A stretch of DNA of 64,000 bases from Sminthopsis crassicaudata (lineage: Eukaryota), in contig NC_133619.1 in assembly GCF_048593235.1 (NCBI RefSeq), forward strand, positions 597,859,963 to 597,923,962. The letters are read 5' to 3'. The notes under the pieces were generated by a model. That model was not told the DNA's origin. It searched no databases and was given only the letters and a program-made list of their open reading frames with translations. Positions 1 through 63,011 of this stretch are shown here, piece by piece (positions within the stretch are counted from its first letter, which is position 1; every line of letters starts with the position of its first letter). The position numbers and the translations under genes were made by a program.

Positions 1-800
1 TATTTTAACTCATTGCTAATGGAATTGTGAATTCTGGAAACTAAAGTGGAATAATGTTAAAAAATTTATTAAATTATATATAATCTTTGACTCAGAAATA
101 TGGCTATTAGTCCTCAACCCTAGAGAGATCAAAGAAAAAGAATAAATATGCAAATATGTACAAATATATTTATAGAAATTCTTTTTCATGGTGACAAAGA
201 GTTGGAAACCGAGAGTGCCTATCAATTGGGGAATGACTGGATAAGTTATGGTAGTTATGAAGTGGATGGAATGCTGTTGTTATGCTTTACAAAATGATAA
301 AGGGTATGATTTAAGGAAAAACCTGAGAAAACTTAAATGAACTGGTATAAAATGAAGTGAGCAGAATCAGGAGCAAAATTTATACAATAACAACAGCACT
401 ATAATGATAAATAACTTTGAAAATGTTAGCTGTAATATAATAACCCAAGACAATCCCAACAATCATGATACAAAATGCTATCTACCTCCAGAGAAAGACC
501 TGATAGTATCTTAATATAGACTGAAACATACCATTTTCACTTTCTTTTCTTTGTTATTTTCCTTTGGTTCAAGTTCCACAAATGATTAATATGGATTTCC
601 ATATTTTACATGATTGTATGAATATCAGATTGCTTATTGTCTCAGAGGTGAGGAAGAGAAAGAGGGGAGCATAGATTTTGGGACTCAGAACTTTGAAAAC
701 CTAATATTAAGCCTGTTTTTACATGTAATTGAAAGAAAAAACAATTTAAGAAAGATTTAGAAACTTTTATCAACACAATGGCTAACAACAATTCCAGATG
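1..800 (+). mobile_element. L1 3' fragment (ORF2 C-terminal region and 3' UTR), degenerate
   Basis: Resembles the L1 3' ends at 6350-7270 and 36590-37170 (tcaattggggaatgactggataagttatgg; cagattgctt..gggaggaagag tail). Boundaries approximate. Confidence 0.65.
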
Positions 801-1279
801 ATTACACATATCTATATATGTAATGGGTCTTATTTTTGTTGCTTTCTCAGTGTAAATAAGGGAAAGGTGAGAAAAAAGAATCATAGCTGAAAATTGAAAA
901 AGTGAATTTAATAAAAGAATACAGAGAACAGAACCAAGATGGCTAAGTAAGGTGAATTCTCCCAGCATTCCAAACAATATTAAAATAATGCCTTAAATAC
1001 AATTTTGGAGTTGCAGAACCAACAAAAAGTGAAAAGGAAACATTTTTTCCAGTCTAAAACAACTTAGCAGAACTGCAGAAGAGGTCTTTAACACAAATGT
1101 GGATACAGACTCAGACCTTAGAAGGAGCAACACTCCAGTGGGCCTTGGAAGTAGCCATGACAGCAGCAGCTTCTTGGGAAGCTCTCAGTCAAGAGAAATC
1201 AAGGAGGCCAATCAACTGATCAGAAGATATTACAGAAGCATCTTTGCCAGCAAAAAATTAAAAAAAAAAATACATTTCT

Positions 1280-1412
1280 GGGCAGCTAGGTGGCACAGTG
1301 GATAGAGCACCAGCCCTGAAATCAGGAAGATCTGAGTTCAAAAGTGAATTCAGACACTTAATACTTCCCAGCTGTGTAACCCTGGGCAAGTCACTTAACC
1401 CCAATTGCCTCA
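1280..1412 (+). mobile_element. WSINE1-type CORE-SINE
   Basis: gggcagctaggtggcacagtggatagagcaccagccctg head with Pol III A/B boxes (gagttcaaa) and core ctgggcaagtcacttaacc. Confidence 0.9.
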
Positions 1413-2328
1413 GGAGGGGGAAAGGAAGCTTCTTTGCTTGCATTGGTTGCATTGGAATGAATTAGGAACTCTATTGACTATAATAAATGTGGATTGAAGT
1501 TACTGGAAGGAAAGGAATATTGTGATTGGTTATGAGTGAGCACTGATTACAGTTCCAGAGCCAAGAGGAGCATTAGTACTTGTGACTGCAAGGGAGCAGG
1601 ATCCCTTCAAAGACCAGTGCACAGATGAGAAGAGTAGTGACCACAGCTTTCCCAGAATAATACTACATTGGAAGCTTTGAAAACTTGAAGCTCAGAATTA
1701 GCTCTGAAAACAGCAACACAAAAAGCCTGAGATTTGGCACAGTGTCTCCCTTTCCCCAAGAAAAACCTTAACAAAAAGTTCAAAGTGCAGAAATAGAGTA
1801 ATAAAAATGAGGGGGGAAAAAGAATTTGGCCATAAAAAGCTACTATAGTAGCAGGAATAACAATAACATAAACTTAGAAGAAGCTAACAATGTGGAAAGA
1901 ACTATGAGTGAAGCCTGAAAAAAAATTTCCAATTTAATCCAAGGCCAGTAAGAATTCCTGGAGGAAGAAAAATGGGGGAAGAAATAAGAGTGGTGCAAGA
2001 AAAAAGAATCAACAGTTTGGTAAAAGAGCCACACAAAAAGTACTGAAGAAAATACCTTTAAAAACAGAAAAGGCCTAATGGTAAAAGAGGCACAAAAATT
2101 TACTGAAGAACTATTTTTTAAAAATGGGCCTAATTGAAAAAAAAGTTTAAAAGTTCACTGAATTTCAATTCAAAAAAAGAAAATATTAAATATTTCATAA
2201 AGAGAATAATGTACACAGTAACAATAACATTATGTAATGATCAACTGTGATGGGCTTGGCTCTTCTCAACAATGTAGTGATTCAAAGCAATTCCAATAGA
2301 CTTGATAGTGAAAATGTCATCAATAGAG

Positions 2329-2467
2329 AGGCAGCTAGGGGGCGCAGTGGACAGAGCACCAGCCCTGAAGTCAGGAGGACTTGAGTTCAAATCTGTTCTC
2401 AGACACTTAACACTTCCTATCTGCGTGACCCTGGGCAAGTCACTTAACTGCCTCAACAAAAAAAGAA
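2329..2467 (+). mobile_element. WSINE1-type CORE-SINE
   Basis: Same head and core as the 1280 copy, with A tail. Confidence 0.9.
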
Positions 2468-2989
2468 AATGTTATCAATATCCAGAGAGAGAGCTATGGA
2501 GATTGAATGTGGATCAAAGTACAGCATTTTCACCTTTTCTTGTTTTTTTCTTTCTCATATTTTCCCCCTTTTGGTCTGATTTTTCTTGTACAACATGACA
2601 AATCTGTAAATACTTTTAAAGGGATTACACATATTTAACCTATATCAGATTGCTTGCTGATTTGGGGAGGGAGGAAGTAGAGAAGGAAAAGAGAAAATTT
2701 TGGAACACAAAGACTTATAAAAAATGAATATTGAAAACTACCTTTACATGTAAATAAAATACTATTGAGAAAAAAAACCCAATGAAAAAAATTAGAATCA
2801 GGCAACTAAAAGCTAATGACTCCATAAGACATCAATAAACAATTAAAGTCAAAAGAATAAAAAAGAATAAAATGTTGAATATTTCATTGTAATAACTCAC
2901 CTCAAAAATAGATCAAGGAGAGATAACTTAAAAATTATTGGATTGTCTGAAAGACATGAACAACAACAAAAAGAATCTAGATTTCATGT

Positions 2990-4060
2990 AAGTGTTTCCA
3001 GGATTTTCTGCAATCAGCCTGCTCATCATTTCAACAATATTCCATTGCATTCATGTACCATAACTTATTCAGCTGTTTCCCAACCAATGGCCATCCATTC
3101 AGTTTCCAATTCTTTGCCACTACAAACAGAGCTGCTACAAACTTTTTTGTGAGTCCTTTTCCCTCTTTTATGATCTCTTTGGGATACAGATCCAGTAGAG
3201 ACTCTGCTGGATCAAAAGGTATGAATAGTTTGATAGATGATAGACATAGTTCCAAATTGCTCTCCAGAATGGTTAGATCATTTCACAACTCCACCAACAA
3301 TACAACAGTATCTTACTTTTCCCACATCCCCTTCAACATTCTTCATGATCTTTTCCTGTCATCTTAGCCCAATCTCTGAAGTATAAAGTGGTACCTTAGA
3401 GTTGTCTTAATTTGCATTTCTCTAATCAATAAGGATTCAGAACATTTTTTCATATGACTAGAAATGGCTTTAATTTCTTCATCTGAAAATTTTCTGTAAA
3501 TATTCTTTGACCATTGATCAATTGGGAAATGGCTTATATTCTTATAAATCTGAATCAATTCACTATATATTTTAGAAATGAGGCCTTTATCAGAAACACT
3601 GGCTGTAAAAAATTTCCCCCTCCAGATTTCTGCTTCTCTGCTAATCTTGGATGTATTTGTTTTGTTTGTGCAAAAAATTTTATAATTCAATGTAACCAAA
3701 AATATCCATTTTGCCTTTCATAATGTTTTCTAGTTTTTCTTTGGCCAAAAATCCCTCTCTTCTCCACAGATCTGGGAGGTAGATTGTTTTCTTAATTTGC
3801 TTATAATATCACGTCTAAGTCATGAACCCATTTCAACCTTATCTTGGTATAAAGTATTAGATATTGGTCAATGCCTAGTTTCTGCCCTACTATTTTACAG
3901 TTTTTCCCAATAATTTTTGTCAAATAGTGAATTCTTATCCCAGAAGCTGCAATCTTTTAGTTTATGAAATACTAGACTACTATAGTTATTGACTATTGTG
4001 TCTTATGAACTTCACCTATTCCACTAAACCACTACTCTGTTTCTTAGCCAGTACCAAATG
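2990..4060 (-). mobile_element. L1 ORF2 C-terminal fragment, antisense insertion
   Basis: ORF 3364-3699 gives FTASVSDKGLISKIY...MKKCSESLLIREMQIKTTLRYH; ORF 3031-3255 gives FDPAESLLDLYPKEI...FVAALFVVAKNWK. Both are typical L1 ORF2 C-terminus. Confidence 0.9.
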
Positions 4061-5454
4061 GTTTTAATGACCGCTGATATTTTAGAACCAGAGGGTGAGA
4101 TAGAAATGGAAAGAATACACTGGTCACCTCTTGAAAAGATCTCAAAATGAAAACTCTTAATAATAGTATAGCCAAATTATGAAGCTGCCAGAAAAAGAAG
4201 AAAATATTGCATGCAGCCAGAAATAAACAATTCAAATAGTGTGTAGCCTCAGTCAGAATAACCTAAACTTTAGCAGCTTCCATGTGGAGGACTTCAAATA
4301 TGATATTCCAGCAGGCAAGTGAGCTGGGGTTACAACCAAAAATTGCCTATCCAGCAAAATTGAATATAATCCTTTGACTGGAAAATGGATATTTAATGAA
4401 GTAGAGGACTTATAAGCATTTTTGATAAAAAGACCAGAACTGAATAGAACATTTGAAATTCAAACAGAAGACTCAAGAGAAGCATAAAAAGGAAAACATG
4501 AAAGAATAATCATAATGGACTCAATAAAGTTAAATTTTTTGCATTCTTATATAAGAGGAGGATATATGTATGTATAATTCCAAAGAACTTTCTTATTATT
4601 AAGGCAGTTAGGACTTATATAGACAGAGGGCAAAAGTGTGAGTTTATTATGTTTGAATTATCTTCAAAAACAGAATGTAGGGATGAGAAAGAAGGATGGA
4701 GAAGGGGGAAGGAGGAAAAAAGAAAGGAGTATTAAAGTAGAATACATTTTCTCACAGAAAAGAGGTTTGCAATGAAGAGCTTTTGTAGTGGAGAGAGACA
4801 TGAGTGAGTGGCAAATAATGCTTGAATTCATTAGAATTGTTTCAAAGAGAGAAGAATGCATACTATGTGTATGCATGGATGTTTTATGTTTGTGTATACA
4901 CTTATGTATATTGCTTGTACATGTATATGTGTGTATGTATGTATATGTAGACATATATATGCACATATATAAAAGTACTCAACAATCTATCTTACCCAAT
5001 AGGAAAATAGGAGGGGAAGGGTGAATTGGGGGAGGTAGTGATTGGAAGCAAGACAGACTTTTGAGGAGGGACAGGATAAAAAGAGGAGACAGATAAACAG
5101 AGGAAATGGGATGGAGGGAAATATGATCTTAACCATGAATGAGAATAGGATGAGCTAACCCATAAATTGGAAGGGAATAGCAGAATGACTTAGAAACCAG
5201 AATCCAGTAATATGTTGTACACAAGAGACACACTTGGGGCAGAAAGACACACACATTTCCACAAAATTGAAATGAAAGCCTGGAGCTGTCTATTCTTTAA
5301 TTGAAATGAAAAAGGTGAGGATTAGGGTAGCAATCACCATCTCAGATAAATTCAAAGCAAAAATAGATCTAATTGAAAGAGATAAGCAAGGAAACTACAT
5401 TTTTCTAAAAGGTACCATAAACAATGAAATATCAAAAAAATTAAAGCATGTTTC

Positions 5455-5930
5455 TGTAGAGAGCTACACATAGTGGGGGGAGCTCTGGGTGAGGTATAAG
5501 ACCCTTCAGCCCAGAGGGAACCTGCTGACACTGTCTGATGTGGCTCCTCATCTCCCCATGAGGCATCTTACCCTTCAGGGTAAATCAAGGAGTAGGGTGT
5601 GACCACCTGTGTTCTACTTGTAGCAAGGGATACTTACAATAAAGCAATAGCAGGGTGCTTTTAGTTAATACTTGTGTGCTGTGGTGATGTAATGATTCTA
5701 TAGTTGGCATATGCTCAATGTGTCATAGTAATGTAATCGTGCTGAGGTATTTAGGGGCTGAGAGGACTTGAAATAAATGGACTCCATCTTTGACCATCCT
5801 CGTGGGTCCCCTGCTTTATCACTCTTCCACTGAGACCAAGGACTTGGGCTAGTCCTGAGATCCTCCAGAAAGCTAACCCAGATGGTATATTTTGGCACCC
5901 CACTGTGGGGGCTCTAGAACGCATACTACA
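5455..5930 (+). mobile_element. Solo LTR (ERV) inserted in L1
   Basis: TGTAG...CTACA termini; 6-bp TSD tgtttc at 5449-5454 and 5931-5936; internal aaataaa. Confidence 0.88.
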
Positions 5931-5969
5931 TGTTTCTCTGATAAAAGTCTTATTTCCCTAATATATAAG

Positions 5970-5971
<2 letters not shown>

Positions 5972-6006
<35 letters not shown>
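5972..6006. repeat. (TA)n microsatellite
   Basis: Direct reading. Confidence 0.95.
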
Positions 6007-6009
<3 letters not shown>

Positions 6010-8259
6010 AAGCACTTTTTCTCAATTGACAAATGGTTAAAGAACATAAACAGCAAATTTTTAGAAGAAATCAAAGCTATACATCATCATATGAAAACAT
6101 GGACTACTAATTAGAGGACTATTGATTAGAGAAAGGCAAATTGACAGCTCTATAAAACTTCACAAGCATCAAAAATGAAAAAATGCTCATTGATATGAGG
6201 ATATGAGGGAAAACAGGTACATTAATGAACTATTGGTGTAGTGAACTAGTCCAACCACTCTGAAAAACAATATGGAGCTACCCACAAAGGGCTTTGATAC
6301 AAAAATACTACTGCTAGCTCTGTATCCCAAAGAGTTTTACAAAAGGGGAAAGGATCTATATGTACAAAAATATCTATAGCTGCTCTTTTTGTAGTGACAA
6401 AGAAAGCCTGGAGCTGTCTATTCTTTAAAAAACTGAGAGAATGTCTATCAGATTAGGAATAACCAAACAGGTTGTTCATATGGCATATTTTTGTGATGTA
6501 GTAGAATTGTTCTATAAGAAATGACAAAGGATTTGGAACTATGCCCAAAGGGCTATAAAACTGTGCATAGCCTTTGATCCAGCAGGGTCTCTCCTGGGCT
6601 TGTATCCCAAAGAGATCTTAAAGAAGGGAAAGGGACTCACATGTGCAAAAATATTTGTGGCAGCCCTTTTTGTAGTGGCAGAAACTGGAAACTGAATGGA
6701 TGCCCATCATTTGGAGAATGGCTGAATAAGTTATGGCATATGAATTTATGGAATATTATTGTTCTATAAGAAATGATCAGCAGGATCCTGGAGAGACTTA
6801 GATGCTAAGTGAACTGAGCAGAACCAGGAGATTATTGAACATGGCAACAACAAAATTATAGAATCATCAATTCTGATAGGTGTGGCTCTTTTCAACAATG
6901 AGATGATCAAGGAATGCTCCAATGATCTTGAAGAGAGCCATCTACACCCAGAGAGAGGACTGTGGGAACTGAGTGTGGATCACAATATGACATTTTCAAT
7001 CTTTTTGTTGTTTATTTGCATTTTATTTTCTTTCTCATTTTTTCCTTTTTCCTTTGATTTTTCTTGTGTAGCAAGATTATTGTATGAATATATGTTCATA
7101 TATTGAATTTAACATATATTGAATTTCTTGCCATCTAGGGGAGGGGATGAGGGCAAGGGGGGGAATTGAAACACAAGGTTTTGCAAGAGTTAATGTTAAA
7201 AATTATTCATGCATATCTTTTCAAAATTAAAAAGCTTTAATAAAAAAATAAAGTTCTTAAGAGAGAAAAAAAATTACAAAGGAGAGTAGTTTCAGGGAAA
7301 AAAGCTGCAAACAAATGAAGGAAGATCTATGTGAACTGATGCAAAGTGAAGCGACAAGGACTAGGAGATAAATGTTACAATAACAGCAATGTTTTAATGA
7401 TAATCAATGTTGCTCTGATCCAAGATTATTCCAAAGCACTCATAATAAAAAAAAAAAATCTATTCAACTCCAGAGAGAGAACTGATGAACTCTGAGTACA
7501 AATTGAAATATTTTATTTTTCTTTGTCTTTTTTGCAATATGGCTAATATGGAAATGTTTTGCAAAATTTCACATGTATAATTGATATATTGTTTATCTTG
7601 TCAGTGGGTGGAGACTGGATAAGAAGGGAAGGAGAGAATCTAGAACTCAAAATTTAAAAAGTTAAAAATCAATGTAAAAAGATATTAAAGTGGTAAAATG
7701 ACAAAAACTCATCTATTTTGTGATTAGCATGATGGACAAAATGGGTTAGGGTTAGAGTTAAGAGTAGGGATAGTCTTCTTGGCCAACTGTATCCCATAAA
7801 TTCAAATTTATGGAGTTTTGATCTATGATAACATTGGCCAAATAGTGACTAATAAAAGAAATTCTTTGGTTATCATCAGTAGTGTTACCTATAGTACATC
7901 TCTTACCATGATAACACATGATAATTTACAACACATGATATGCATTTCCTTTTTGATTTTTCTTGTGCAGCAAGATTATTGTATAAATATATGTGCATAT
8001 ATTAAATTTAACATATATTGGATTATTTGCTATCTAGGGGAGGGGATGAGGGCAAGAAGGGGAATTGGAACCAATTGGAACCATTAAAGTGGTTCGGTGG
8101 GCTGGCCTCGGAAGGTGAGAACTAACTAGATTGAACAGAAAGGGTACTTCATACAGGGAACTGCTCAGGAATGGTGGGAAGTGGGGTATTGAGAAGGAAA
8201 GAAAAAAAAGGAGGGAAGGAAAGAGGGAAGATTAATCTATTTTCCAGATCAGTTGTTTT

Positions 8260-9530
8260 TCCAATAAGATATTTCACATTTTCTTCTATTCATTCATTCT
8301 TGATATCTTGTGGAGACATGCTCAATTCTAATTTTTAGGAAATTATTTTCAGCAGCAGGTTTTTGTACCTCTTTTTCCATTTGGCCAGTTCTACTTTTTA
8401 TAGGAGTTTTCAGCGAATTGTTGCATATCTTTTCCCATCTGATCATTTCTGCCTTTCAAGGCATTTTCTCTTCAGTAAATTTTTGTCTCTCTTACCATTT
8501 GACCTATTCTGTTTAAGGTGTTATTTTCCTTTGAATTTTTTTCTGCTTCATTTGCCAAATTTCATGATTTTCTTGTATCACTATAATTTCTTTCATTTTT
8601 CTACTCTTGAATTTTATTTTATTTTATTTTATTTATTTTTTAGGCTGGGGTTAAGTGACTTGCCCAGGGTCACACAGCTAGCAAGTGTTAAGTGTCTGAG
8701 ACCAGATTTGAACTCGGATCCTCCTGAATTCAAGGCTGGTGCTCTATCCATTGCACCACCTAGCTGCCCCCTCTATGCTTGAATTTTTAAAAATTCCTTT
8801 TAGCTCTTTCAGGAATTCCTTTTTTGGGCCTGATAATTCATATTTTTTTCTGAAGCTTTGGATGTAGCACTTTAGACTTGTCTTTTGAGTTTGTGTTTTG
8901 ATCTTTTTTGTGACCCATGCTAATTTTCTTTGGTCAGAATCTTTAGTTGTTCATTTTTGTATCTATTTTTTAACTTTTATTAGCTTTATATGAGAACTGG
9001 GTTCTGCTCCTCGGATGGAGGAGGCACTGCCCCAAGCTTTAAGGTTTTTTGTATAGCTAATCTTTCAGTTCTTATAAAGGATATGTATGTTTGCCATTCT
9101 CCTGGCCTGTGCTCTGCTCTGACTCTACTCTACTGGGACCATAAACTATGTGTGATAGTGCTCCTCCTTGTCCTGGGCTGTGACAAAGGACTGTGAGCCA
9201 AATCTGAAGATGGGTAGTTAGAGTCCTGCACCCAGTGCCAGCCAAGGGAACCCTGTAATTTCCTTCTCAACAGTCGTCTGACTTCCTTACCCTCTGTGAG
9301 CTGATAGTTCTTGAAGCACTGATTCAGTTGCCCCTGAGGCCTACAATGGCATCTCAGCCAGCTATAATAGACCTTTCCTGACAACCTTCTAAGCTCTCTT
9401 GAGCTGAAAAATTGTTTCACCAATTCTGACACTCCAGATTTGTTCTGAAGCATTATTTAAAGTTGTTGGGGGGGGGGGAATTTGGGAGAGCTCAGGAGAA
9501 TTCCTGTCTTTTCTCTGCCATCTTGGCTTT
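8260..9530 (-). mobile_element. L1 5'UTR/ORF1 fragment
   Basis: Reverse complement begins gccaagatggcagagaaaagac near 9530; ORF1-like AT-rich segment at 8260-8900. Confidence 0.65.
8636..8770 (-). mobile_element. WSINE1-type CORE-SINE
   Basis: Reverse complement of the SINE consensus, ending cacctagctgcccc. Confidence 0.9.
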
Positions 9531-10089
9531 AACTTCAAGGCCTCGGTTTTATTTTATATCAAATTAGATTTGTGACAAGGGACAAGTCATTTAGATTCTC
9601 TAAGAAGTCAGTTTTCTCAACTGTATAATTATGGTAAAAGCAAAGGGTTCTTGTGAGTAAATGAGATTGAATAAAATAAGTGTATTTGTTAGCCTCAAGG
9701 TGCTATATACATGGGACATATTACTATTAGCATTGTATAGTGCATAGAAGTCAGGAAGATTTGAATTCAAATCTCACCTGAGTGCTCTGGGGAACTGAGG
9801 TTCTAAAATGAGAAGGCATTGAGTTGCATTGGGAAAGGGAAATCTTTACTAGAATCTATCCTGATGAAATTCAGGTCCAATAAATATATACATATATTTA
9901 CATATACTCAGGTGTTTATGTATATATACACCTACATATATGTTTGCTTGGTTGACTACTTTGATCTTTGCATAGACAGTTACTATTTAAAATGTTTCCA
10001 ACATAGTTTGGGCTCTGTTGGCATTGTTTTCAAGAACCTTTGGTTACCTTCAAGCTAAGATGAAACAGATGACAGTCATAGAGGGAACA

Positions 10090-10270
10090 ACAAACAAAAG
10101 TCTCTTGATTCAGCTCATGCTAGCCAGCTAGTATCTTTAAGGAATCTCATTTCTATTGTTCAGTATATCATCACTCCCATGCCTAACCTTCCAATTCAGA
10201 GTATTTTGCCATCACTTAAGTCAATGACTAAAATGTTGAATGACATAAGTCCAAAGACAATTCCCAAGCT
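10090..10270 (-). mobile_element. L3/CR1 RT fragment
   Basis: Reverse strand encodes a degenerate GxxFGxxxFNIxxxDL-type CR1 RT motif. Confidence 0.45.
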
Positions 10271-11427
10271 CGCTCCATGGCGTAGTAGAATCCTACATTT
10301 AGAGTTAGATCAGGGTTCAAATCCTTTTTTTCTATTATAACTTACTATATGATGTTGGGCAAATCTCCTAATCCTGTAACCCCTTAGGCCTGGAATTTTG
10401 GAGGGAGTTGGGTGACACCTAATTTCCCTTCCAGTTCTAAATCTGTGATCCTATGATATACTAGCAGTCTTTCTATAGGAGTTATGAACTCATTGATGAA
10501 CCTCTCTTGGGGTCCAGAAGAGCTCATTCCAAGCCTATCTCACAACTCATCTCTCTCCAGCCTGGCTGCAAGACAGACTTTGTCCTATCGTTTGTCTTTT
10601 TCCTCCATGAGCCTCTTTAGGGATTGTGTTTTCTTCATCTTGGCCTCCTTAGCTCTGAGAATATTAGAAAATATTCAGTGAATGGGATGGCATGAAATAG
10701 AAACTAGATCTACTTTTGATTCACGGGAGTCACACTTCTTCTTCAAAGTCCTCTCGAGAGGAGAGAAAGGGTACCATTACTCAGGCTTCTAGGTGACTGT
10801 TTATTGTGCTCCTACCAGAGACAGAAAAACAAGAAATGATCCCATTGCTTTCCAAGTTGCAGCTGGAGCCAGTGGCAGGAGGTTGAGGGAGAAAATGGAG
10901 TAGGAATAATTGTGTTGTGTTGAGCCACAAACTCCCAAGACAGACCAAGAGTGGTAGATTACATGCACTATGCCTCGGAAAAAAGATTTCATGATGCAAA
11001 AATGATTTGTTATGTTCTCTGACTTTTATCAAAGTCATTTCCCTTTCCTTGGTCTCTTTAAAATTTTAAAATTTGAAGTTGGTTCTTTGACCCAGAGGTT
11101 CTTATAGGTATATTAGGTATATAACCCAGAGACAAAAAAGAAAATCCCCATATGTATTAAAATATGCAGCACTGTAGTTGAAAAATTAGAAAACAAAGTG
11201 CTCACTGATTAGAATTAGCTAAATTATAGTACATATAGAATATTGTAATACCGTAAGAAATGACAAATATGAATTCTGAGAATAGAGATTTATGTGAATT
11301 TATGAGATCAAGTTTTGCTTAAGAATCGTATTTTAATATGCATAATGACAACAAAAAATTAAATGGAAAGAACATTGATCTGAACACTGAAGAAAATTAC
11401 TACTACTTTGATTCATAGAGCTCATAG

Positions 11428-11547
11428 AACTCAGGAAGAACCGAGTTCAAATCTAGCCTCAGACACTTAATACTTCCTAGCTGTGTGACCCTGGGCAAGT
11501 CACTTAACCATAATTGCCTCAGCAAAAAAAAAAAAAAAAAAAAAAAT
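11428..11547 (+). mobile_element. 5'-truncated WSINE1-type SINE with poly(A)
   Basis: B box, core and A tail; flanked by the direct repeat aaaattac..tactttgattc. Confidence 0.88.
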
Positions 11548-11665
11548 TACTACTTTGATTCTAAAGTTGCTTTTCTATGTCCTTGAGTTCAGCAATTTCT
11601 ATTTCCTTCTGAATTAAAGTTATCTTTCTTACCAGTAGCCCCAGGGATAACCTCCAGGATATGTT

Positions 11666-12140
11666 TGTTATCTTTAAGACCTACAAGTGGATACTATTCC
11701 TCAAAAGATTTTGTCTGTCCTTGCCTGTCCTTGTACAATTAAAGGAGTTTTTAATCACTTCAAGAAGACAGCAAATGTGGTAATTTTCATCCCCTAACAA
11801 AGATTACAAGATGCAAATGGATCCCATAAAACAATTAAAATTTCTTAATTGTCAGAGAGAGGTGGTAATTAACCTCACAAGAATGCCAACCTACCTTTCT
11901 TGGTATAATCAATCATGATCTTCCTGCCCAAGCCTGACAACCTATTACTTTTTCTCCACATCTACCAAGACCCCTTTTTTGTTCTGTGTCAATATAAGAG
12001 GACCCTCTCAATGGGGTTTCTGGCTTTACTGAGGTTGCCAATCTGACCCACTTTATCAGCATAAACATTACTGTTAATAAACTGATTTTGCTTGGGGCGC
12101 TGTACCTCAGTTTACCATTATTAATTTTATTTGCCATAAC
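11666..12140 (+). mobile_element. Probable solo LTR
   Basis: TGTTAT start and ATAAC(t) end; TATAA at 11993-11997; AATAAA at 12076-12081 followed by a U5-like segment. No clean TSD seen. Confidence 0.45.
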
Positions 12141-12722
12141 TGCACAATTATGACGATCAGCTTTGGCCCTGGAGATCAGATAATTTAATGTACTTTTCTT
12201 CAGTGGAGAAACAAAGGGTTATTCCTGTGAAATATGCATGTGAAATTGCCTCCCCTTTCCTCGAAATCACTTCCAATTTATCCTATTTATAGCTTATTTC
12301 TATATAGTTGTTTGCATGTTTTCTCCCCCACTAATCTATAAGCTCTTTGAGAATAGAGATTATTTTTTGCCTTTCTTTGTATCTCTAGGACTCAGTGAAG
12401 GGCCTAGTACATACCAGGCACTTAGTAAATGCTTGTTGAATTGTATATGAGGCTGAACAAGGTTGATGCATTGGTTGGCTCTGCTGAGTGGATATATTTC
12501 TTTAAAAAAATCTTTGTTATGAGGGAAGTCTTGCTGGGTAGGAAGGTAGGGAAGAAATCTGTTGGGAAATGGATGTAGTATATAAACAAAAGATACTAAT
12601 AAAGCTTTTAAGCATCAACTTAATCTTGGGATGGGCCCTGGTATCCTCTGAACTCCCCTGTGGCTCCATGACTCTGAGACTAAATGTGGCAGTGCTAATA
12701 AAGGGTTGAGGCAGCTATGGCC

Positions 12723-12799
12723 TTATACACTGGAATCCAGGATATATATGGCCTGTGGGTGCTGCCGGCTTCTGAATTGGTGTCCATGGCCCCTCCTAC
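12723..12799 (-). CDS. CLDN16-like exon 5 (cytoplasmic tail, PDZ motif SSV)
   Basis: ctctgctctgctccacag|GTAGG...GTA TAA; alternative in-phase acceptor at 12859. Confidence 0.75.
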
Positions 12800-14442
12800 C
12801 TGTGGAGCAGAGCAGAGGAGAATCTGGATATGACATTTCATAAGGTCTCACCCTTAACTCTGACTGGGGACCCTGGGACTGGGAGGTGGAAGTAAAGCTA
12901 GGACCTCCCCCGCAAATGCCTGCTTGTTTGAAGAAGGGAACTTGGGGAGAGGAAGTGGGAGGGTTCTTGGACATACTGACCTGGGAGCCAGAGGCCTGGA
13001 AGACAGCAGGCCAGACCCAAAGCAGTGGCCATGCAGCCACCAGATCCCACAATACCTAACCAGCAAGACCAGCCCCACTCATAATAGCCAGTAAGAGGTC
13101 CTCGGGGATGAGTAGGTAGGGTTCTCTCCAGAGCCACCTCCACAGCAAACCAGAGTGACCCCAGTGCTCCAGGGAACCCTAAAGCAAAGGTGAGTGGGTT
13201 GATCCCCCTGTTTTGAAGTCCAGTACCAGCAGCCTCTCTTCCTCAGAAGCCCCAGTCTGGACCAGTCCCTCCCACACAGTTTCTGGGTGCTGAACTCCAC
13301 CTGCCCTTCTCCCTTTCCTGGAGCTTGGGTCCAGCCCCTAGTTTCAACCCTGGCTCTACCCCTTGCTGTTCCCCTCCTCCCTCACCTCCGGCACCTAAGA
13401 GACATCCTGATGCCCAGGCCAGCCGAACCCTTATCCTGGGATCAGTCCCCAGGAGCTGCACCTGGGTCAGAGTGAGGAGCAGGGCCACCAACCCACAGCT
13501 ACACAGCATCCCGGCCAGGAGCAACAGGGACCTGGTCAACACCCGGCGTCCTGGGGGAGGGGGAGCGGAGAGAAGGGGCATGGGGAGCACCAAGGAGTAA
13601 GGCTCAGGGAGCTGAGGGGAGGGGCACAAGGAACATTTTGCAAGGGGTCATGGAGAGGGAGGATGTTCAGGGAGTACTGAGGGGGATCAGGAAGCCCTGG
13701 GGGAGAAGAGAGCTGAGGGAAAACTGGAAGGATGACTTCAGAAACAAGTTATCTACTGGGGAAGAGCCTGGGAGAAAAGGAAAGGTGAGAAACAATGGAG
13801 AAGGAAGCCCAGAGGAGGGAGCCGGAGGGAAGTATGGTGGAAGGAAAATGGGGTAGGACTCCCCATGGCCGGGACAATGTACGCGAGGAGACGGGAGTGT
13901 GGGAAGGGTCTGTCATAGCGGGTGCTGCCCTAGGAAGACAAGAGCTAGGACCTGGACAGGGCCCTGCAGGCGGGGTAGGGGTGGAGGGCTCACGTGGATG
14001 TGCGGCCAGGATGGAATCGTACTGGTCGCAAGTCCGAATGCCATCCAGTAGATTGGTGACGCACGCCCGCCACAGCCCTTGGCATTTGTGGCTTACCTGG
14101 GGGTGGGCAGAAAGGGGAAGGCAGACTGAGCGAGTCCGAAAGGCAGCGGGCCGCTTCCACTCGGAAGAGGGAGCCGGAGGCTGCGTTACTCGCACGTCCT
14201 AGTGCGGTTTTTCCTACTTCAGCGGTAAGCTCCTTGAGGACAGGGCCTGTGTCACGTCAATCTTCACGCCACCCTCCCACGTCTCTGGGGTCCGACCTCA
14301 AGCCTTGCTTATTCTTTCTCCCCCCTACTCCTCCTATCCTGAGCCTCAGCACCAAGGAGAGCTCCTGGTTACGGGCTCTTCTCCCCCTTCTCCTTGCACG
14401 CAAGGGAGAATTAAAAAGTGCTAAATTACCCATTAAGAAAAG

Positions 14443-14476
<34 letters not shown>

Positions 14477-15018
14477 AGACGCGTTGCTTTCCACTGAGTG
14501 CTCTTGCCGGACTAGGTGAGCCAGAATTGATCGGGAGGTGGATTAAGACCAGTTCAGCACGCGGGGGGAGGGCTAGGATCGGAGCTGGGAGGGCCTTTGG
14601 AAAGGCACAGGACTGGATGGGATCTGGGCTAGGAAGGATGCTGAAGAGCGATGGGGGCAGAGTAGGTTCTAGAAAGAACAACAGGGGGCTGGAGCGAGAC
14701 TGGTCGGGGTTGGGGCCAGGATGCCGACTAAGGCTTGTTTGGACTGGATCAGAACTTGCAAGGGGTGTGGCCTCGGGGGAGAGGAGGATCCTGAACTGGT
14801 GCCGGGTTTTATCAGCCGAACTTCAGAGGACTCAAATTGCCTGCGAGGGGCAGGGTGGAGGTTCGAGGTTTGAGAAAGGGGCTCCCTGACTCTCCCCCTC
14901 TCACCTCCAGACTGTCGTCGGAGTTCACCACCCAGCAGTCGGTCCAGGTGGCCGTGAGCAGCAAGGCCGTAGAGAGCAAGGCCAGACTGGCCAGCGGCAA
15001 GAGGCTGGGTCCTGGCAT
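12723..15018 (-). CDS. Claudin-16-like protein, CLDN16 paralogue; 5 coding exons; 218 aa (or 238 aa with the upstream exon-5 acceptor)
   Basis: Exons 15018-14905 (114 nt), 14096-13994 (103), 13550-13386 (165), 13178-12981 (198), 12799-12723 (77; alt start 12859, 137). All introns GT-AG with phases 0,1,1,1 and no internal stops. Protein: [72 protein letters not shown]...[17 protein letters not shown]...YILDSSV. Recalled human CLDN16 exons are 114/103/165/192/134. Confidence 0.9.
12981..13178 (-). CDS. CLDN16-like exon 4 (ECL2-TM4)
   Basis: tttgctttag|GGTTCC...CCCAG|gtcagt; 198 nt; [30 protein letters not shown]. Confidence 0.9.
13386..13550 (-). CDS. CLDN16-like exon 3 (TM2-ICL-TM3)
   Basis: cctcccccag|GACGCC...GGAG|gtgagg; 165 nt; [15 protein letters not shown]... 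Confidence 0.88.
13994..14096 (-). CDS. CLDN16-like exon 2 (ECL1, GLW-C-C signature)
   Basis: ccccag|GTAAGC...CCAC|gtgagc; 103 nt. Confidence 0.93.
14443..14473. repeat. Poly(A) run in CLDN16-like intron 1
   Basis: Direct reading. Confidence 0.9.
14905..15018 (-). CDS. CLDN16-like exon 1 (TM1, start of ECL1)
   Basis: ATG at 15018 gives 38 codons to LE, the same as CLDN16; donor GAG|gtgaga. An in-frame upstream ATG lies at 15063. Confidence 0.88.
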
Positions 15019-17504
15019 TGGAGCCTGCAGGCGACAGTAACCCAGACGTCCGGCCCGCCCCATCTCCCAGCGCCATCGTCCTTCCCAGGACCCACAGATC
15101 CCTCTGTCTCCCCGGGGAACTACAGGGCGGAGGCCTAGGGGGAGAACCCGAATTTAGTATCCACAGACTGTGAGACTGACTTTGTTGGCAGGTTTCCTTA
15201 GGGTGGAAGGATTTGACGCTGGAGCAGATCACTGTCCCCGGCTCCTATCCCTCATCTGAAGTAGCAAAGCCCCAGGATGCCCGCGAGTGGGGGGTGGGGA
15301 CCCCGCTATAATCCCTCGGGCCCAGGGGGGGTATCTCTAACTCCCCGCGGAGGCCGGAGAGCTGGGCTCTGGGACTGTGGGGAAAGTCACCGGCTACCTA
15401 TGTACTGCGAGGATGCTGAGTATGGAGGATTATTCCCAGACAGTCTACAGGAGAATTCGTAGATACAGTCTCAGAGGATGAGTCTCTGATGATCTACAAG
15501 CACTAGACGCTTGATTCGTATTAAACATCAGCTCCACTCAGTAACCCGCCCCGTCTACGTGGGCATAAAGTCTCAGAAGGTTGGTCACTGACGCCATCTA
15601 GGAGAGTTAGACATCTGACACGGTCTATAAGGGTTAAATACTAACCCGTGTTAGCCGTGTACCCGGGGTAGTCATTGACGCAGTCGATGATTCGGTCCAG
15701 GAGGACTGCCATCTCTCCGAGTTTTGATAGTAATAGAGTCTCTCTGACCCCACTGGGTCTTTTGGGTCTAGACCCCTCATCCATCTTTTTCAGTCCCTCC
15801 CGATCCCACCTCCCCACCCTGAACCGCCCGAGGGCCGACCTGCACTGGAGGACTTCCGGACAAGAACCTGGCCCCGGCTTCAGTCTGGTGGTCGCGTCCC
15901 TAGAGACAGAGTTGGGGCCGAAGGAGCTGCCGCCGCCGCCCAGCCCCGCGCCCCGGGCTACAGCCGGTTGGGAGCTCGTTACCCAGTCCTAGCCCGGGCT
16001 TCGCCTGGTGGAGTCCTGCGGGTTCCAGAGCTCGAACTGGAGTACTGGGGCAGGCCTAAGGGGCGCGGCCAGGGGGCGGAGAGCTGAAGGCAGAGTTCAG
16101 GATGGTGGGGGGGGGGTGCAGTGAGGGGCTGCTAGTGGGGGTGGGGATTCGGGAGAATCACATGCGGATCCAGGTTTCCTTCGCATTCCAAGTCAAGCCC
16201 TGGGCACCTGTCCAGCCCACGAGGGCAAGCTTGGCCCTCTTTCCTGAGGGACAAAAACTCTACACCACCCTTTCCCCTCCGGAGCCGCCCCTGAATGTGC
16301 CCCACCAAGGCAGGATGGGAAGGGGCTTTTTGTCAGCTCTCTCCTGGGCCCTCTTGGCAGACCCTCAGAGCAGGGACTCTGCTGCAGTCTCCTTCCCCAG
16401 GCCTCAGGCCTCAGCCTTAAAAAAGTCTTGGTCTTCAGAATTGTGAGATAGATTCTTAGGCTTCTAAGAGAATATGGAGGGGGGAGAGGATGCATCTCCT
16501 CCCTAGGAAGTAATGTCAGGACAGAAGAGGCTCTAAAGATCCAAACAATCTCTACTTTTAATCTCAGTGCCGATTCTTTACATAAAAGAGTGACTTAGGT
16601 CCTAAGGGATGAAAACCAAGAGAGGAAAGTCAGATTCTCCCTAAGAGGAGGAGAAACCAGAGTTTAATAGTAAAAGTCATGAGACTTTCTTTGGATCTGT
16701 TCTTTTAAACTCCTGCTGTTTCTCTGCATTAACCAGGAGTGAGACCTCTCTTATTTACTGATGCCAGTGAGCAGCACAAGGGAGAAGTCATTGGTATTCA
16801 TAGGACTTAGACCTCAGAGGTTATTCATTGAATCCTCATTTTATTGATGAGGTGAGAACCAAAGTGGTTGCATAAGATCACAAAGTTAATGGTAGTTTCC
16901 AGAATAGAACCTGATAGAAGGAAGGAGGGGATGCTGGTCACACTTGTCCCCTTTGCCACTCCTTTTTTGTCTGTCACCAGTTGTTTGTCTCTGTCCCCAT
17001 CACACTCACTCACCGTCACCTCCTACTCCCAGACAAATGAAAGACACCAAAGTCAAGAAAAACAAATCAGGACTTCTCTTTGCATATGGACTAAAGTCAC
17101 AGAAGCATAGCTTTCCACCCTGGTGGAAATTCAAGGAATAAAAGAGAAACAGAGGGGAGTAGCTGGGGCCTGGGAGGGAGCCAGAGATGGGGGCTGCTAG
17201 GTTACAAGCCTGGATCTCCCCTCATGGGTGCAGGCACTTTTATAATTTTTCTGAAATTCAAAAGAAAAAAAAGGGCCATTAGTTTTGCTGAGAGAACCTG
17301 GGTTCTGGAGATCTCAGGTCTCTGGCATCTCTGAGGAGCAGGGGTCACTGTCCCCAGCATCCACTCACATCCCACCCACAGCCCACTGGTCTAGACACAG
17401 ATTGGCAATGGCCTTAGCCCACACCATCCTCCTTCCCTGTTCATGTGATAGGAGGCAGATTCCTGAGCCCCTGCAGTAGTGAGTTTTCTCTCCATTTCTC
17501 TAGA

Positions 17505-17635
17505 TGTATGTGTGTGTGTGTGTGTACATGAGAGACAAAGAGAGAAAGAGATGACAGAGGATAAGACAGAGAGAAATGAGAGAAACAGAGACAGAAAGAC
17601 ACAGAGACAGAGAAAAAGAGAAAGAGACAGAGAGA
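17505..17635. repeat. (GT)n followed by a GA-rich simple repeat in the CLDN19 3' region
   Basis: Direct reading. Confidence 0.85.
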
Positions 17636-17898
17636 ATGTTATCTCTCCAAGTTAATGCCGATGGGCCACTCTCATGTGTGCCTGTGAGACTTTGCCTTAT
17701 TCTGTGTTGGTATGTGTGAACTGAGGAATGAGTGCTATTGGGAGCTACCTGATAAGCCATGGGGATGACTCTCACCCTCAGCCCATAGCACAGAGGCTGG
17801 CTGAGGGGTTGCCTCTTCACCTGCCTTGGGGCTGACAGGGGCATAGAGGATGTGGGAGTTAGGGACAGGATTAACAGGCCCAGGGCTGGGCCAGGGAC

Positions 17899-27699
<9,801 letters not shown>

Positions 27700-39826: not shown

Positions 39827-40179
39827 CTTTGGTTGTCTATATAAGGTACCCAAATACTGGAGTGTTGCTGGCTCTGAAAGCCGGCCTGCACCAGGACTCC
39901 TGGCAGCTGCCCAATCCCCCAGAGAGGGAGAGCTGAGCCTCCAGGCCAGAATGTAAGAAGCAGCAGGCCGGCCCTTCCGGCCAGCCACTCAAGTAGTAGC
40001 ACCAAGCCTGGGGGACATGTCCAGTCACTTTGGCTCTGCAAATTGGTGCAAGCAGCAGACAGAAGTCACAACCAGTTCCCTAGCCCCAAGGCACTTGAGG
40101 GGACCAGACCGATCTCATCGCAGGCACCCCAGTTCTCCATCAATCCGTGTGCAGCCAATACCCTTCCTCCTGGACACTG

Positions 40180-43100
40180 TCATAACTCATCCTTGCTCCC
40201 TGACTTGGTCGCTGAGGGAGGCTCCGTGGGAGGCACAGGTGCATCCTGGGACTTGTCATGGGGCTGCTCCTGGGACAGGTCCGGTTCTTCAGGGCTGAAG
40301 AGCATCTTCACCAGGTCGTCTGCCTGCACTCGGTCCTGTGAGTACAGAGGGCAGGTAGGGCAGGTAGGGAAAGTCCCTATCACCTTTCCTAGTGGTTAGG
40401 GGGCCTTATGACCTGGGAAATCATTTTCTCCAGTCATCTCCAACTTTGGAGGAAGGGGCATTCAGAAGACCTCACCCCTAGTTCTGCCTGCCCCTGGCAT
40501 TCTGGGGCAGAAGAAGACAATGAGTCACTTAAAATTACTGTCATGATATCTAGTCTGGAGAAATAAATAGGCTCCCAAGAGAGTGAAGGGGCCTGACGCA
40601 TCCTGTCCAATCTTGCCCCTTTTTCTGAAGAGGGGTTAGAGATCATCAGGACCCGCCAGGTGTTCTTCCCACCACATTTCGGTCAGGGAGAAGGAAGATG
40701 GAGGAAGTGGAGTGGAGGGGGGATAGGAGGGGGGTCCTCTGAGAAGGGAGCACTCACCCGCTCACTGTGCCGGGGGTCCAGGGTGAACCAGAGTGCAATG
40801 GCGCAGCGCTGCCCCCTGGTGACAGCCCTCACCCCATGCGGGTTCTCAGCCCCTGAGGTGAAGCCCACCGCTCTGCCACACTGGGGCTGCACTTCTGCCT
40901 GAGAAAGGAAACAAGGTAGGCTGTGGCACTTGGCCCTGGGCCAGGGCAGGTGGCAGGTGCCAAGCAGTGCCAGAGCCCAAACCAGGGCTGCCAGGCTGCC
41001 TCCAGGGAGGCACCCTGTGCCCTCCCGTCCCGGGCACTGCAGCTACCCCACACCTGCCAGACCCCAGGACAGTCACTCACCGTCACTGTCTTGGCATCTA
41101 GTTCAGTGAAATAAAAGTTTCCTCCGTCAAAGTCCCCATTTAGGTAGAGAATAGCACTGGAAGAGACACAAGCAGACGCTGAGTGTGGGCCCTCCATCAG
41201 GCTCCAGGCCTGATCAGGACAGCTGGCCCTCAGGAGGGAGAGGCCCTGGGGGAAGCGAGGATAGAGGCCTGCTACCTGTAGTCCCGGAAAGTGTAGGCAG
41301 GAGGCTCCTTGATGCACACCAGTGCCTCTGAATTCAGGATGCAATTGTCCACGTGCACCGGATGGCTGCTGTCGGTCCTGTCCTCCTGGGCTTCTAGAAT
41401 CCAAGCACGTCAGCTGTGAGGCAGAGACCCCCCTCCCTACCAGGAGGCCCCAAGTGCCCCCAAAAGAGAGACAGGAGGAAGGGGCTCCACCTGCGGGACC
41501 TACCTTCGATCGCTGTGCGGCACACCAGGTGGGAGTAGGAGAAATAGAGGGGCGTATCCAGCCGGAAGTAGGATTCCATGACGCGCCTCACCTTCTCGGT
41601 CACGTTGTAGTAGAGATGGGCACTCTGCAGGGGCACCTTCCCCTCCTGGCCCAGCTACCCGGGAGGCATGGCCCAAGGTTAGCGCCAACGCCTGGTCCTT
41701 CCCAGGCAGCCCCCAAGGCTTCTGGTCCTCAGCCCCCTCCCTTTCCCATCATACTCAACCTCCTCAGGACCAAGCTCCTTTACCCCAATCTCCAGATGGC
41801 TTTTGGGTGCTCCTCAAGGGCCCCTGAGCTTTCTCCTCAGAAAACAATCTTCCCCTAATCCTGAGGTCTCCCGATCTTGTCCTCCCTCTTTCTGACAGCA
41901 TGTGACCCAATGTCCAGTAGGAGGACCCCAAAATAAAGCTCCTTAAACACAGTGACCCTTCTTTCCAGGGAAAGCAGGAGGAAGGGGGTAAAGCAGCTTT
42001 CTTTGAATGCCTTCCTTTCGAGCCAGTCTATCGTTCTTCTCACCTTGAGGGCTTTGAAGACAGTGACCCCGTAGAACTTCTCACTTTTGGTGTGGGGAGA
42101 AGTGTGACCTCGGTACCCATCCCCTGCAGTTGCTGCTGCCTGGAGGACAGACCCCCAATCAGAGAAGAGTCACTGTTCCTCATGCCAGACGTCCCTGCCG
42201 CCCAGAGCCCACCGGCCGAGGGCAGGGTTATCAGTCCTCTTGGGGAGGGGAGCAGGGCTGGGATCCCTCTGGCAAAGCCACTCACATTGGTGAGTCTCTG
42301 CAGCTGCCGACACTCATCATCAGAGATGACTCCATCCATCACCACTCGCTGGGAGCCATTCAGCACCTTGGAGCTCATGGTAAGGCTGATTCCATCATAG
42401 AGGAGGGGGCCTCCTGGAGGAGAGGATGGAACCCAGCTGGGATTGGGCCCATGACCCGCCTAGGAGTGCCTGCTCTCTGGGGACGTCTCCCTCCTACCAC
42501 CCCCAGAGGCAGTGTGGCTTTGTGGGAAGCAGGAAGCTGTGAAAGGCAGGGGCAGGCCTTGCTCTCGGCTCTGCCCCTAGAGACCATCTGACAACCTGGG
42601 CTATTATAGCCTACAGAGAAAAGTTTCCAAAAGTCTCCAACAGGAACAACTCAAACCATTTAAGAAGCACTGACAGCTCAGGAGTGCTTTTCCAAAACCC
42701 CCAGGAAATGGGCTGCCCAAGTGTCTGCTGTGTCATATTAGGCAAGGCTCTCCTAGATGAGAGGGTGCTCCATTCAGGGTCTCAATAGGGGCACTGGCTG
42801 AGTGTGGAACTGAGATGAGACCCCAAGGCCATGCAGCACGTGAGTAGAAAACTCGCAATCTGAACCCAGGGCTTCTGATTAGCGATCTAGAGGCTTTTCC
42901 CATCTGACCACCTAAGGCCCCTGACAGGCATCCTCCAATTATGGGCATCTGCCTTATTCTCCCAAGCAGATAATAATGGAGAGGAGGGCAGGATCATGTC
43001 TCCTCCCTTCTGGATTTTCCACAGAGCCAATAAGGCCTGGCTGAATTGAATGGTTATTGGACTCTTAGGGGTCTTGTTTTCATTGGTTTGCATATTACTA

Positions 43101-57748: not shown

Positions 57749-63011
<5,263 letters not shown>

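Follow-up and report, generated by a model that had tools for sequence, protein, structure and literature searches.

The window analyzed here is a stretch of 64,000 nucleotides from the genome of the marsupial Sminthopsis crassicaudata, the fat-tailed dunnart (RefSeq assembly GCF_048593235.1, contig NC_133619.1, positions 597,859,963 to 597,923,962 of the forward strand). At 15018-12723 on its minus strand lies a claudin gene that RefSeq labels "claudin-16-like" and that we call CLDN16L. This locus is very probably the dunnart copy of an old vertebrate claudin gene that follows CLDN19 closely in tandem, on its downstream side, and represents the sister paralogue of CLDN16.

Gene model, splicing and encoded protein

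The coding sequence, read as the reverse complement and assembled by script, consists of five exons with 657 nucleotides and translates without a stop into 218 amino acids. The four coding introns all have GT-AG ends, and their acceptors are preceded by pyrimidine-rich tracts. The features of the gene are listed below in the order of transcription, together with the joints (pairs of window positions brought together by splicing) that were seen in RNA contigs. TM1 to TM4 denote the transmembrane helices, and ECL1 and ECL2 the two extracellular loops.

15840-16030, minus strand: non-coding 5' exon, donor at 15840/15839 with GT at 15839-15838, 5' end at or beyond 16030
14905-15024, minus strand: exon 1, acceptor at 15024, coding part 15018-14905 (114 nucleotides), joints 14096/14905 and 15024/15840
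13994-14096, minus strand: exon 2, 103 nucleotides, joints 14096/14905 and 13550/13994
13386-13550, minus strand: exon 3, 165 nucleotides, TM2, the intracellular loop and the start of TM3, joints 13550/13994 and 13178/13386
12981-13178, minus strand: exon 4, 198 nucleotides, TM3, ECL2 (GWSCWLG) and TM4, joints 13178/13386 and 12799/12981
12723-12799, minus strand: coding part of exon 5, 77 nucleotides including the stop codon TAA at 12725-12723, joint 12799/12981
11525-12722, minus strand: 3' untranslated region (UTR), at least 0.4 kb and probably about 1.2 kb, its lower coordinate extrapolated from the length of a contig of run X8

The start codon is at 15018, with the acceptor of exon 1 six nucleotides before it. 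Exon 1 codes for the N-terminus, TM1 and the start of ECL1, and exon 2 for the core of ECL1 with the GLW motif and both cysteines, which is the most conserved part of the protein. Exon 5 adds a short cytoplasmic tail, and the protein ends in ...YILDSSV. A GC-box-like sequence at about 16055-16075 lies just upstream of the non-coding 5' exon.

Transcripts were followed in Logan contigs from four sequencing runs (X1, X6, X7 and X8), which we placed on window positions 12300-18250 after applying the cut offsets stated by the tool. All four coding introns are matched exactly by contig joints across X6, X7 and X8: 14096/14905 occurs in all three of these runs, 13550/13994 in X7, 13178/13386 in X6, and 12799/12981 in X6 and X8. 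A further joint, 15024/15840 (X6 and X7), defines the non-coding 5' exon, and one X7 contig covers 15839-16030. Contig 21 of X8 (1384 nucleotides) extends from exon 4 across exon 5 as far as 12300 and then continues for about 775 nucleotides, while the X1 contigs span the whole region without joints and are DNA-like. CLDN16L has a 5' exon of its own from which it is transcribed, and its splicing follows the prediction exactly.

The product is identical at 218 of 218 positions to XP_074153720.1, "claudin-16-like isoform X2" of S. crassicaudata, so that the model had already been annotated automatically in RefSeq; this match and the RNA contigs joined at exactly these four introns show that the gene model is not a product of chance. 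What we describe is thus the recognition and interpretation of a gene already in RefSeq, not the discovery of unannotated sequence. An initial annotation, made from the sequence alone, had proposed five in-phase, stop-free GT-AG exons of 114/103/165/198/77-137 nucleotides. Script assembly, RNA joints and RefSeq identity all bear this out, and the 77-nucleotide option is the right one for the last coding exon. It had also guessed that the gene would carry an automated "claudin-16-like" label and nothing more, which proved exactly right: the label is the one guessed, and a full-text literature search on this label and likely synonyms found incidental mentions but no study of the gene.

Two features of the locus touch the contigs. 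In intron 1, an unbroken run of about 33 A bases (plus strand, about 14443-14475) is a point at which RNA and DNA contigs alike break. In the 3' UTR, at 12303-12333, contigs of X1, X7 and X8 depart from the assembly at 12333 and share the letters that follow (GAATGGAAACCC...), and other contigs join it at 12303. An indel or insertion polymorphism may be the cause, or else another splice.

The product is a claudin of four helices that carries the ECL1 signature, an acidic ECL1 (net charge -4) and a C-terminal S-S-V. Pfam was tested on the full-length protein, single exons being too short to score, and gave matches to PF00822 (35.8 bits, cutoff 26.7) and PF13903 (32.5 bits, cutoff 29.1). The predicted W-GLW-C-C signature is present as W29, G45-L46-W47, C50 and C61, and these residues are invariant across a 64-sequence alignment. 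An AlphaFold model built with a 64-sequence alignment has helices at residues 6-26, 73-105, 110-147 and 164-191, with a predicted local distance difference test score (pLDDT) of about 90 in the helices and a predicted template modeling score (pTM) of 0.66. Claudin-19 (3x29) is the best match in the PDB by sequence, and Foldseek searches of the PDB with the model returned claudin-19, -3, -4, -15 and -9 as the best matches (template modeling scores of 0.70-0.74 by target). By manual count, the 49 residues of ECL1 are identical at 39 positions to the CLDN16 loops of both the dunnart and a primate, in agreement with the roughly 40 of 50 that the initial annotation gave for human CLDN16 over the ATW...HP stretch.

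Genomic setting and relation to CLDN16

A separate, true CLDN16, as expected by the initial annotation, is found in the same assembly: XP_074153975.1 ("claudin-16 isoform X1", 235 amino acids) is the product of a gene of 32.7 kb located at 5.54-5.59 Mb of CM109183.1. The sequence that this locus has in common with the window consists of short repeats only. CLDN16L is therefore not the only CLDN16 of the genome. Nor is it at the CLDN1-CLDN16 locus, its neighbors in the window being the following two genes.

17899-27666, minus strand: CLDN19, exons 27666-27442, about 24770-24606, about 24370-24286 and 18063-17899 (ending ..REYV and a stop)
40060-56858, minus strand: P3H1 (prolyl 3-hydroxylase 1), from exon 1 (56268-56858) to the KDEL stop near 40060

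CLDN16L starts about 0.6 kb beyond the 3' UTR of CLDN19, on the same strand. CLDN19 has an alternative last exon from 17250 downwards (joint 17250/17909 in X8), and its two 3' ends match the known isoform types of 211 and 224 amino acids. The second neighbor we take to be P3H1 from open reading frame (ORF) pieces that match features of this protein (a TPR-like N-terminal part, ...SAILYLNGDFDGGNFYFTELDAKTVT..., and KDEL followed by a stop). On the other side, neither tblastx against a bird locus nor a motif scan found YBX1 coding motifs in window positions 1-12700.

The order CLDN19 then CLDN16L on one strand recurs in Dromiciops, tammar wallaby, opossum, platypus, Dryobates (woodpecker), Podarcis (lizard) and Callorhinchus (elephant shark). 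In the three marsupials of this series, a claudin of 224-228 amino acids ends about 2.1 kb upstream of CLDN16L on the same strand. In the platypus, a claudin of 221 amino acids is followed by CLDN16L and then, about 10 kb further and on the opposite strand, by a CSD-domain gene of 340 amino acids in the place expected for YBX1; Dryobates has a gene of 325 amino acids in the corresponding position. The exons of the upstream claudin that were sampled in Dryobates, Podarcis and Callorhinchus match the CLDN19 of the window, including the ..REYV end. The elephant shark has, in addition, a second "claudin-16-like" gene with a long tail, head-to-head with a gene that we take to be CLDN1-like from features of its exon 1 (YAGDNIVTA, GQIQCKV). 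In the assembly of the lamprey Lampetra there is a single gene of this type, with a claudin upstream on the same strand. The initial annotation had seen CLDN16L as a paralogue retained in marsupials. The gene is a retained paralogue, but not one peculiar to marsupials, as its linkage to CLDN19 extends to the platypus, a bird, a lizard and the elephant shark.

We placed CLDN16L in a tree of 69 sequences (IQ-TREE, LG+C20 by posterior mean site frequencies) rooted on two CLDN19 sequences. The candidates came in part from a search with a shark CLDN16-type protein, which retrieved true CLDN16 from mammals (opossum, koala, echidna and platypus among them), birds, reptiles, amphibians, and lobe-finned and ray-finned fishes, along with many proteins of about 221 amino acids labelled "16-like". 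The tree has two clades. One comprises the CLDN16 of bony vertebrates, with a Shimodaira-Hasegawa-like approximate likelihood ratio (SH-aLRT) support of 98 in a quick tree, and the other, which we refer to as 16L, comprises the lamprey gene and the 16-like genes of shark, frogs, sturgeon, eels, osteoglossomorphs and amniotes. Dunnart CLDN16L groups with its counterparts from Dromiciops, tammar wallaby and platypus (support 100/100), inside the amniote 16-like clade (99/98). Constraining these four sequences to group with mammalian CLDN16 lowers the log-likelihood by 19.3 units (approximately unbiased (AU) test, p 0.024), and grouping them with the whole CLDN16 clade of bony vertebrates lowers it by 18.3 units (p 0.029). 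The 99/98 support and both rejections agree with the expectation that CLDN16L lies outside the CLDN16 orthologue clade. Species from shark to lizard and tinamou carry both CLDN16 and 16L. CLDN16L is a paralogue older than the divergence of jawed vertebrates. A possible origin in the genome duplications of early vertebrates, with CLDN16L-CLDN19-P3H1 and CLDN16-CLDN1-P3H2 as a putative ohnologue pair, would agree with the matching neighbors, which are CLDN19 and P3H1 in the window and a CLDN1-like gene next to the CLDN16 of the elephant shark.

It could be argued instead that CLDN16L arose recently, in marsupials or in mammals only, by duplication of CLDN16, with the copy inserted beside CLDN19 and diverging fast thereafter. 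Such a history would agree with the CLDN16-like exon structure and the close likeness in ECL1, and the AU rejection is only moderate. Moreover, with 1.8 substitutions per site the stem of the mammalian clade is very long, and the program flagged the deviant composition of these sequences, a combination that could mislead the tree; since placement in the tree alone is open to artefact, orthology leans on synteny. The shared order of CLDN19 and 16L in platypus, bird, lizard and elephant shark, however, speaks against a recent duplication, as do the presence of both genes in species from shark to lizard and tinamou, the 16L residue states at positions 93, 125 and 216, and a short tail ending in S-x-V as in 16L. 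We regard a recent duplication as very unlikely and retain the reading of CLDN16L as an old, CLDN19-linked sister of CLDN16.

Automatic names do not follow this division. The CLDN19-linked paralogue is named "claudin-16" in brushtail possum, pigeon, ostrich, alligator and downy woodpecker, the true CLDN16 of sharks is labelled "claudin-16-like", and a third, more distant type of claudin gene bears the "claudin-16-like" label too. Such inconsistent naming of CLDN16L orthologues can corrupt orthology-based analyses.

Some further observations concern the surroundings of the gene. The third claudin lies tail-to-tail after 16L in the lizard (17648-23853 of the Podarcis locus, minus strand) and in the elephant shark (17968-20392 of its locus, minus strand). 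It has the CLDN16-type exon layout (..DCWRV / ..CRGLWSEC..), and relatives of it in frogs, a salamander, a blenny and geckos are labelled "claudin-16-like". Neither the window nor the Dromiciops, tammar wallaby and woodpecker loci showed any trace of it, and the opossum and platypus loci gave no match of at least 60% identity. Within the large CLDN19 intron, retroviral-looking ORFs at 21245-23328 (plus strand) resemble, as a whole, a fragmentary endogenous retrovirus; the first matches Integrase_Zn (28 bits, above the cutoff) and, weakly, rve, and the others have no Pfam match. At 57868-58188 (plus strand), an ORF head-to-head with exon 1 of P3H1 has a weak DUF2452 match and fits a C1orf50-like gene sharing a bidirectional CpG promoter.

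Selective constraint, transcript forms and mammalian divergence

Intact CLDN16L is present in at least 12 marsupial species, including the dunnart, across American and Australasian lineages. Orthologues of 217-218 amino acids are annotated in Antechinus, Sarcophilus, Macrotis, Notamacropus, Petaurus, Trichosurus, Phascolarctos, Vombatus, Dromiciops, Monodelphis (XP_007493006.1, K7E1P4) and Gracilinanus, and the tail of the dunnart protein is found again in the 11 other marsupials; the platypus protein (XP_039768154.1) has 206 amino acids. The coding sequences taken from the loci of Dromiciops, tammar wallaby and opossum yield, on translation, exactly the proteins in the database. In these three species and the dunnart, the exon sizes 114/103/165/198/77 and the GT-AG introns are identical, with every splice site kept.

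Over the six pairs among these four marsupials, the ratio of nonsynonymous to synonymous substitution rates (dN/dS, Nei-Gojobori) is 0.12-0.15 at synonymous divergences (dS) of 0.22-0.51. Exons 1 and 2 are the most constrained (dN/dS about 0.04-0.05). Between marsupials and platypus the ratio is 0.20-0.24, with dS near saturation. CLDN16L is kept intact under purifying selection across marsupials and evolves faster than CLDN16, the identity between dunnart and opossum being 87.6% for the former vs 97.0% for the latter. The proposal of a functional, maintained gene is thus supported: the orthologues of 12 marsupials and the platypus are intact, with constraint well away from a dN/dS near 1, and spliced transcripts, which the initial annotation had suggested looking for, occur in X6, X7 and X8.

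Not all transcripts have the full set of exons. Exon 3 is skipped in contigs of X7 and X8 (joint 13178/13994, with short anchors), which stays in frame, shortens the protein by 55 amino acids and removes TM2 to TM3. An internal donor of exon 3 at 13462 was seen once (joint 13178/13462, X6), and the retention of intron 4 (12800-12980) in X6 matches RefSeq isoform X1 of 220 amino acids. These exon-3-skipped and intron-4-retaining forms could be taken, together with the very fast change on the mammalian stem, the lost acidic and TM2 residues described below and the apparent loss of the gene in placentals, as marks of a decaying or unitary pseudogene, or of a transcribed relic that is still open in the dunnart. 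This is hard to reconcile with 217-218 intact codons in 12 marsupial species of American and Australasian lineages, with dN/dS of 0.12-0.15 at dS up to 0.51, with splice sites kept in all four marsupial loci checked, and with correctly spliced contigs in three runs, and we give a pseudogene very little credence. It is also very unlikely that the CLDN16L exons belong to CLDN19, whether as alternative exons at its downstream end or through read-through: although only about 0.6 kb separates the gene from the CLDN19 3' UTR on the same strand and X8 holds transcripts of both, no contig of the four runs over 12300-18250 joins a CLDN19 exon to a CLDN16L exon, CLDN16L has its own 5' exon (15840-16030) after the GC-box-like sequence as well as its own ATG and a complete TM1, and it is expressed in X6 and X7 with little or no CLDN19 coverage.

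As a retained gene, CLDN16L has nonetheless changed markedly in mammals. At 13 of 73 positions that are conserved to at least 90% in both CLDN16 and non-mammal 16L, the dunnart protein has another residue, the changes including R44Q, E49A, K74R, I83L, D86G, Y138F and Y143A. Several of them are common to the platypus and hence date to the mammalian stem. Among the residues that distinguish the two groups, mammalian CLDN16L agrees with 16L at positions 93, 125 and 216; at the other four it matches neither group. ECL1 has 49 residues in all groups compared, and its net charge is -7 or -8 in tetrapod CLDN16, -6 in shark CLDN16, -5 or -6 in non-mammal 16L, -4 in marsupials and -2 in the platypus; this weaker negative charge suggests an altered selectivity. 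The C-terminus is ..DTRV in CLDN16 (..DSRV in the shark), ..SRV in most non-mammal 16L and in the platypus, ..SHV in the lamprey, and ..SSV or ..TSV in marsupials, so that the S/T-x-V pattern is found in all compared C-termini except that of the lamprey.

Composition has shifted as well. Glycine, alanine, arginine and proline (GARP) make up 0.31-0.37 of the residues of mammalian CLDN16L vs 0.18-0.24 elsewhere in the comparison, and phenylalanine, tyrosine, methionine, isoleucine, asparagine and lysine (FYMINK) 0.09-0.11 vs 0.18-0.25. GC content at codon positions 1 and 2 is 0.57-0.62 vs 0.43-0.49, and that at position 3 reaches 0.79 in the platypus. This shift in codons and amino acids makes GC-biased substitution a plausible non-adaptive contributor, and suggests that it underlies the long mammalian stem branch.

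Possible role and comparison with known claudins

CLDN16 (paracellin-1) partners CLDN19 in the divalent-cation pathway of the renal thick ascending limb. It needs CLDN19 for junctional assembly, its TRV tail binds ZO-1, and acidic residues of ECL1 confer cation selectivity. Loss of CLDN16 causes familial hypomagnesaemia with hypercalciuria and nephrocalcinosis, for which CLDN19 is the other disease gene. The catalogue of mammalian claudins used in physiology, drawn from human and mouse, has 27 members.

Placental mammals appear to have lost CLDN16L, or at least to have no annotated intact gene. An exhaustive HMMER search of 1.84 billion cluster representatives with a profile of the marsupial and platypus proteins returned no placental CLDN16L protein: scores dropped from 465 bits for the marsupial cluster to 206 bits with nothing between, and the next matches were sauropsid 16-like or CLDN16 sequences and fragments. 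A word-based search with the Dromiciops orthologue listed only marsupials, platypus and non-mammals; owing to its word prefilter it listed no true CLDN16 either, so that absence there is weak evidence. All placental proteins retrieved with the shark CLDN16-type query are named claudin-16, and the five placental sequences in the tree all fall within the CLDN16 clade. The human locus is not known to have a gene between YBX1 and CLDN19. The eutherian loss put forward in the initial annotation has thereby gained the absence of a placental protein of this type from two protein searches, and for the remainder still draws on the known layout of the human locus.

By analogy with known claudins, the CLDN16L protein would be inserted into tight-junction strands, and its tail may anchor it to ZO-type PDZ scaffolds. 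Like CLDN16, it might contribute to or modulate a cation-permeable paracellular pathway, possibly together with CLDN19, and its properties may have changed in the mammalian lineage through the changes E49A, E70A and, in TM2, D86G during a burst of GC-biased substitution. Taken to its full extent, this suggests the following scenario, which we put forward only tentatively and consider doubtful as a whole: CLDN16L would be a second, ancestral partner of CLDN19 in a paracellular divalent-cation channel, kept from lamprey or shark to marsupials, lost only in placentals, where CLDN16 would be left as the sole partner, and remodelled in the mammalian stem, where two acidic residues of the pore loop and the TM2 aspartate were lost in the GC-biased burst.

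Several observations weigh against our overall interpretation of CLDN16L. X6 has CLDN16L contigs without CLDN19 coverage, and X7 has little or none, so that co-expression or partnership with CLDN19 is not obligatory. Because 13 of the 73 conserved positions have changed, the function of CLDN16L may differ from the ancestral one. ECL1, the loop in question, is poorly modelled in the AlphaFold prediction (pLDDT 40-58). The apparent placental loss is drawn from absent annotated proteins and the known layout of the human locus and not from DNA. Finally, the AU p-values are only about 0.03, and the length and composition of the mammalian stem affect the tree as described above.

As an additional mammalian claudin, kept and conserved by marsupials and monotremes and expressed, as seen in the dunnart, CLDN16L deserves the attention of specialists in claudins and renal transport. 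It offers a natural experiment on the evolution of the CLDN16/CLDN19 pore and sits beside the second gene of the hypomagnesaemia disease. It may also explain some of the differences in renal and epithelial ion handling between placentals and other vertebrates. If the tentative scenario of an ancestral CLDN19 partner were true, marsupials and monotremes would run a tight-junction channel with a selectivity or tissue use that is absent from placental model organisms.

Set against known systems, CLDN16L is an uncharacterised member of the well-known claudin family and not a new kind of system. Its closest counterpart in the same genome is CLDN16, with which it shares five coding exons in the same phases (the first three, 114/103/165, identical in size), the 49-residue ECL1 identical at 39 positions, the ECL2 motif GWSCWLG, and a C-terminus of the class-I PDZ ligand type (S/T-x-V) with an invariant tyrosine six residues from the end. 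The two proteins of the dunnart are nevertheless only 44% identical over their whole length. CLDN16L spans 2.3 kb vs 32.7 kb for CLDN16, and lies beside CLDN19 and P3H1, not CLDN1. Its tail has about 25 residues vs about 45, its ECL1 a net charge of -4 vs -7; it is without E49, E70 and the TM2 aspartate, and it belongs to a separate clade.

The second comparison is with the 16L genes of non-mammals (about 220 amino acids; sharks, sturgeon, eels, frogs, turtles, squamates, crocodilians and birds), some of which are labelled "claudin-16". They agree with CLDN16L in their place downstream of CLDN19, their exons of 114/103/165/192-198/77-89 nucleotides, their short tail ending in S-R/S-V, and their clade. 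Marsupial CLDN16L is, however, only 45-50% identical to them, while the alligator and shark 16L proteins are 67% identical to each other, and it differs in the end of the tail (..YILDSSV vs ..MYAMDSRV) and in its GC-rich composition. CLDN19 (3x29), the product of the adjacent gene, shares the fold of CLDN16L and gives the best PDB match whether sequence or structure is compared. It is nonetheless a distant paralogue of the classic CLDN1/7/19 group, with about 22% identity in the structural alignment and a different exon layout.

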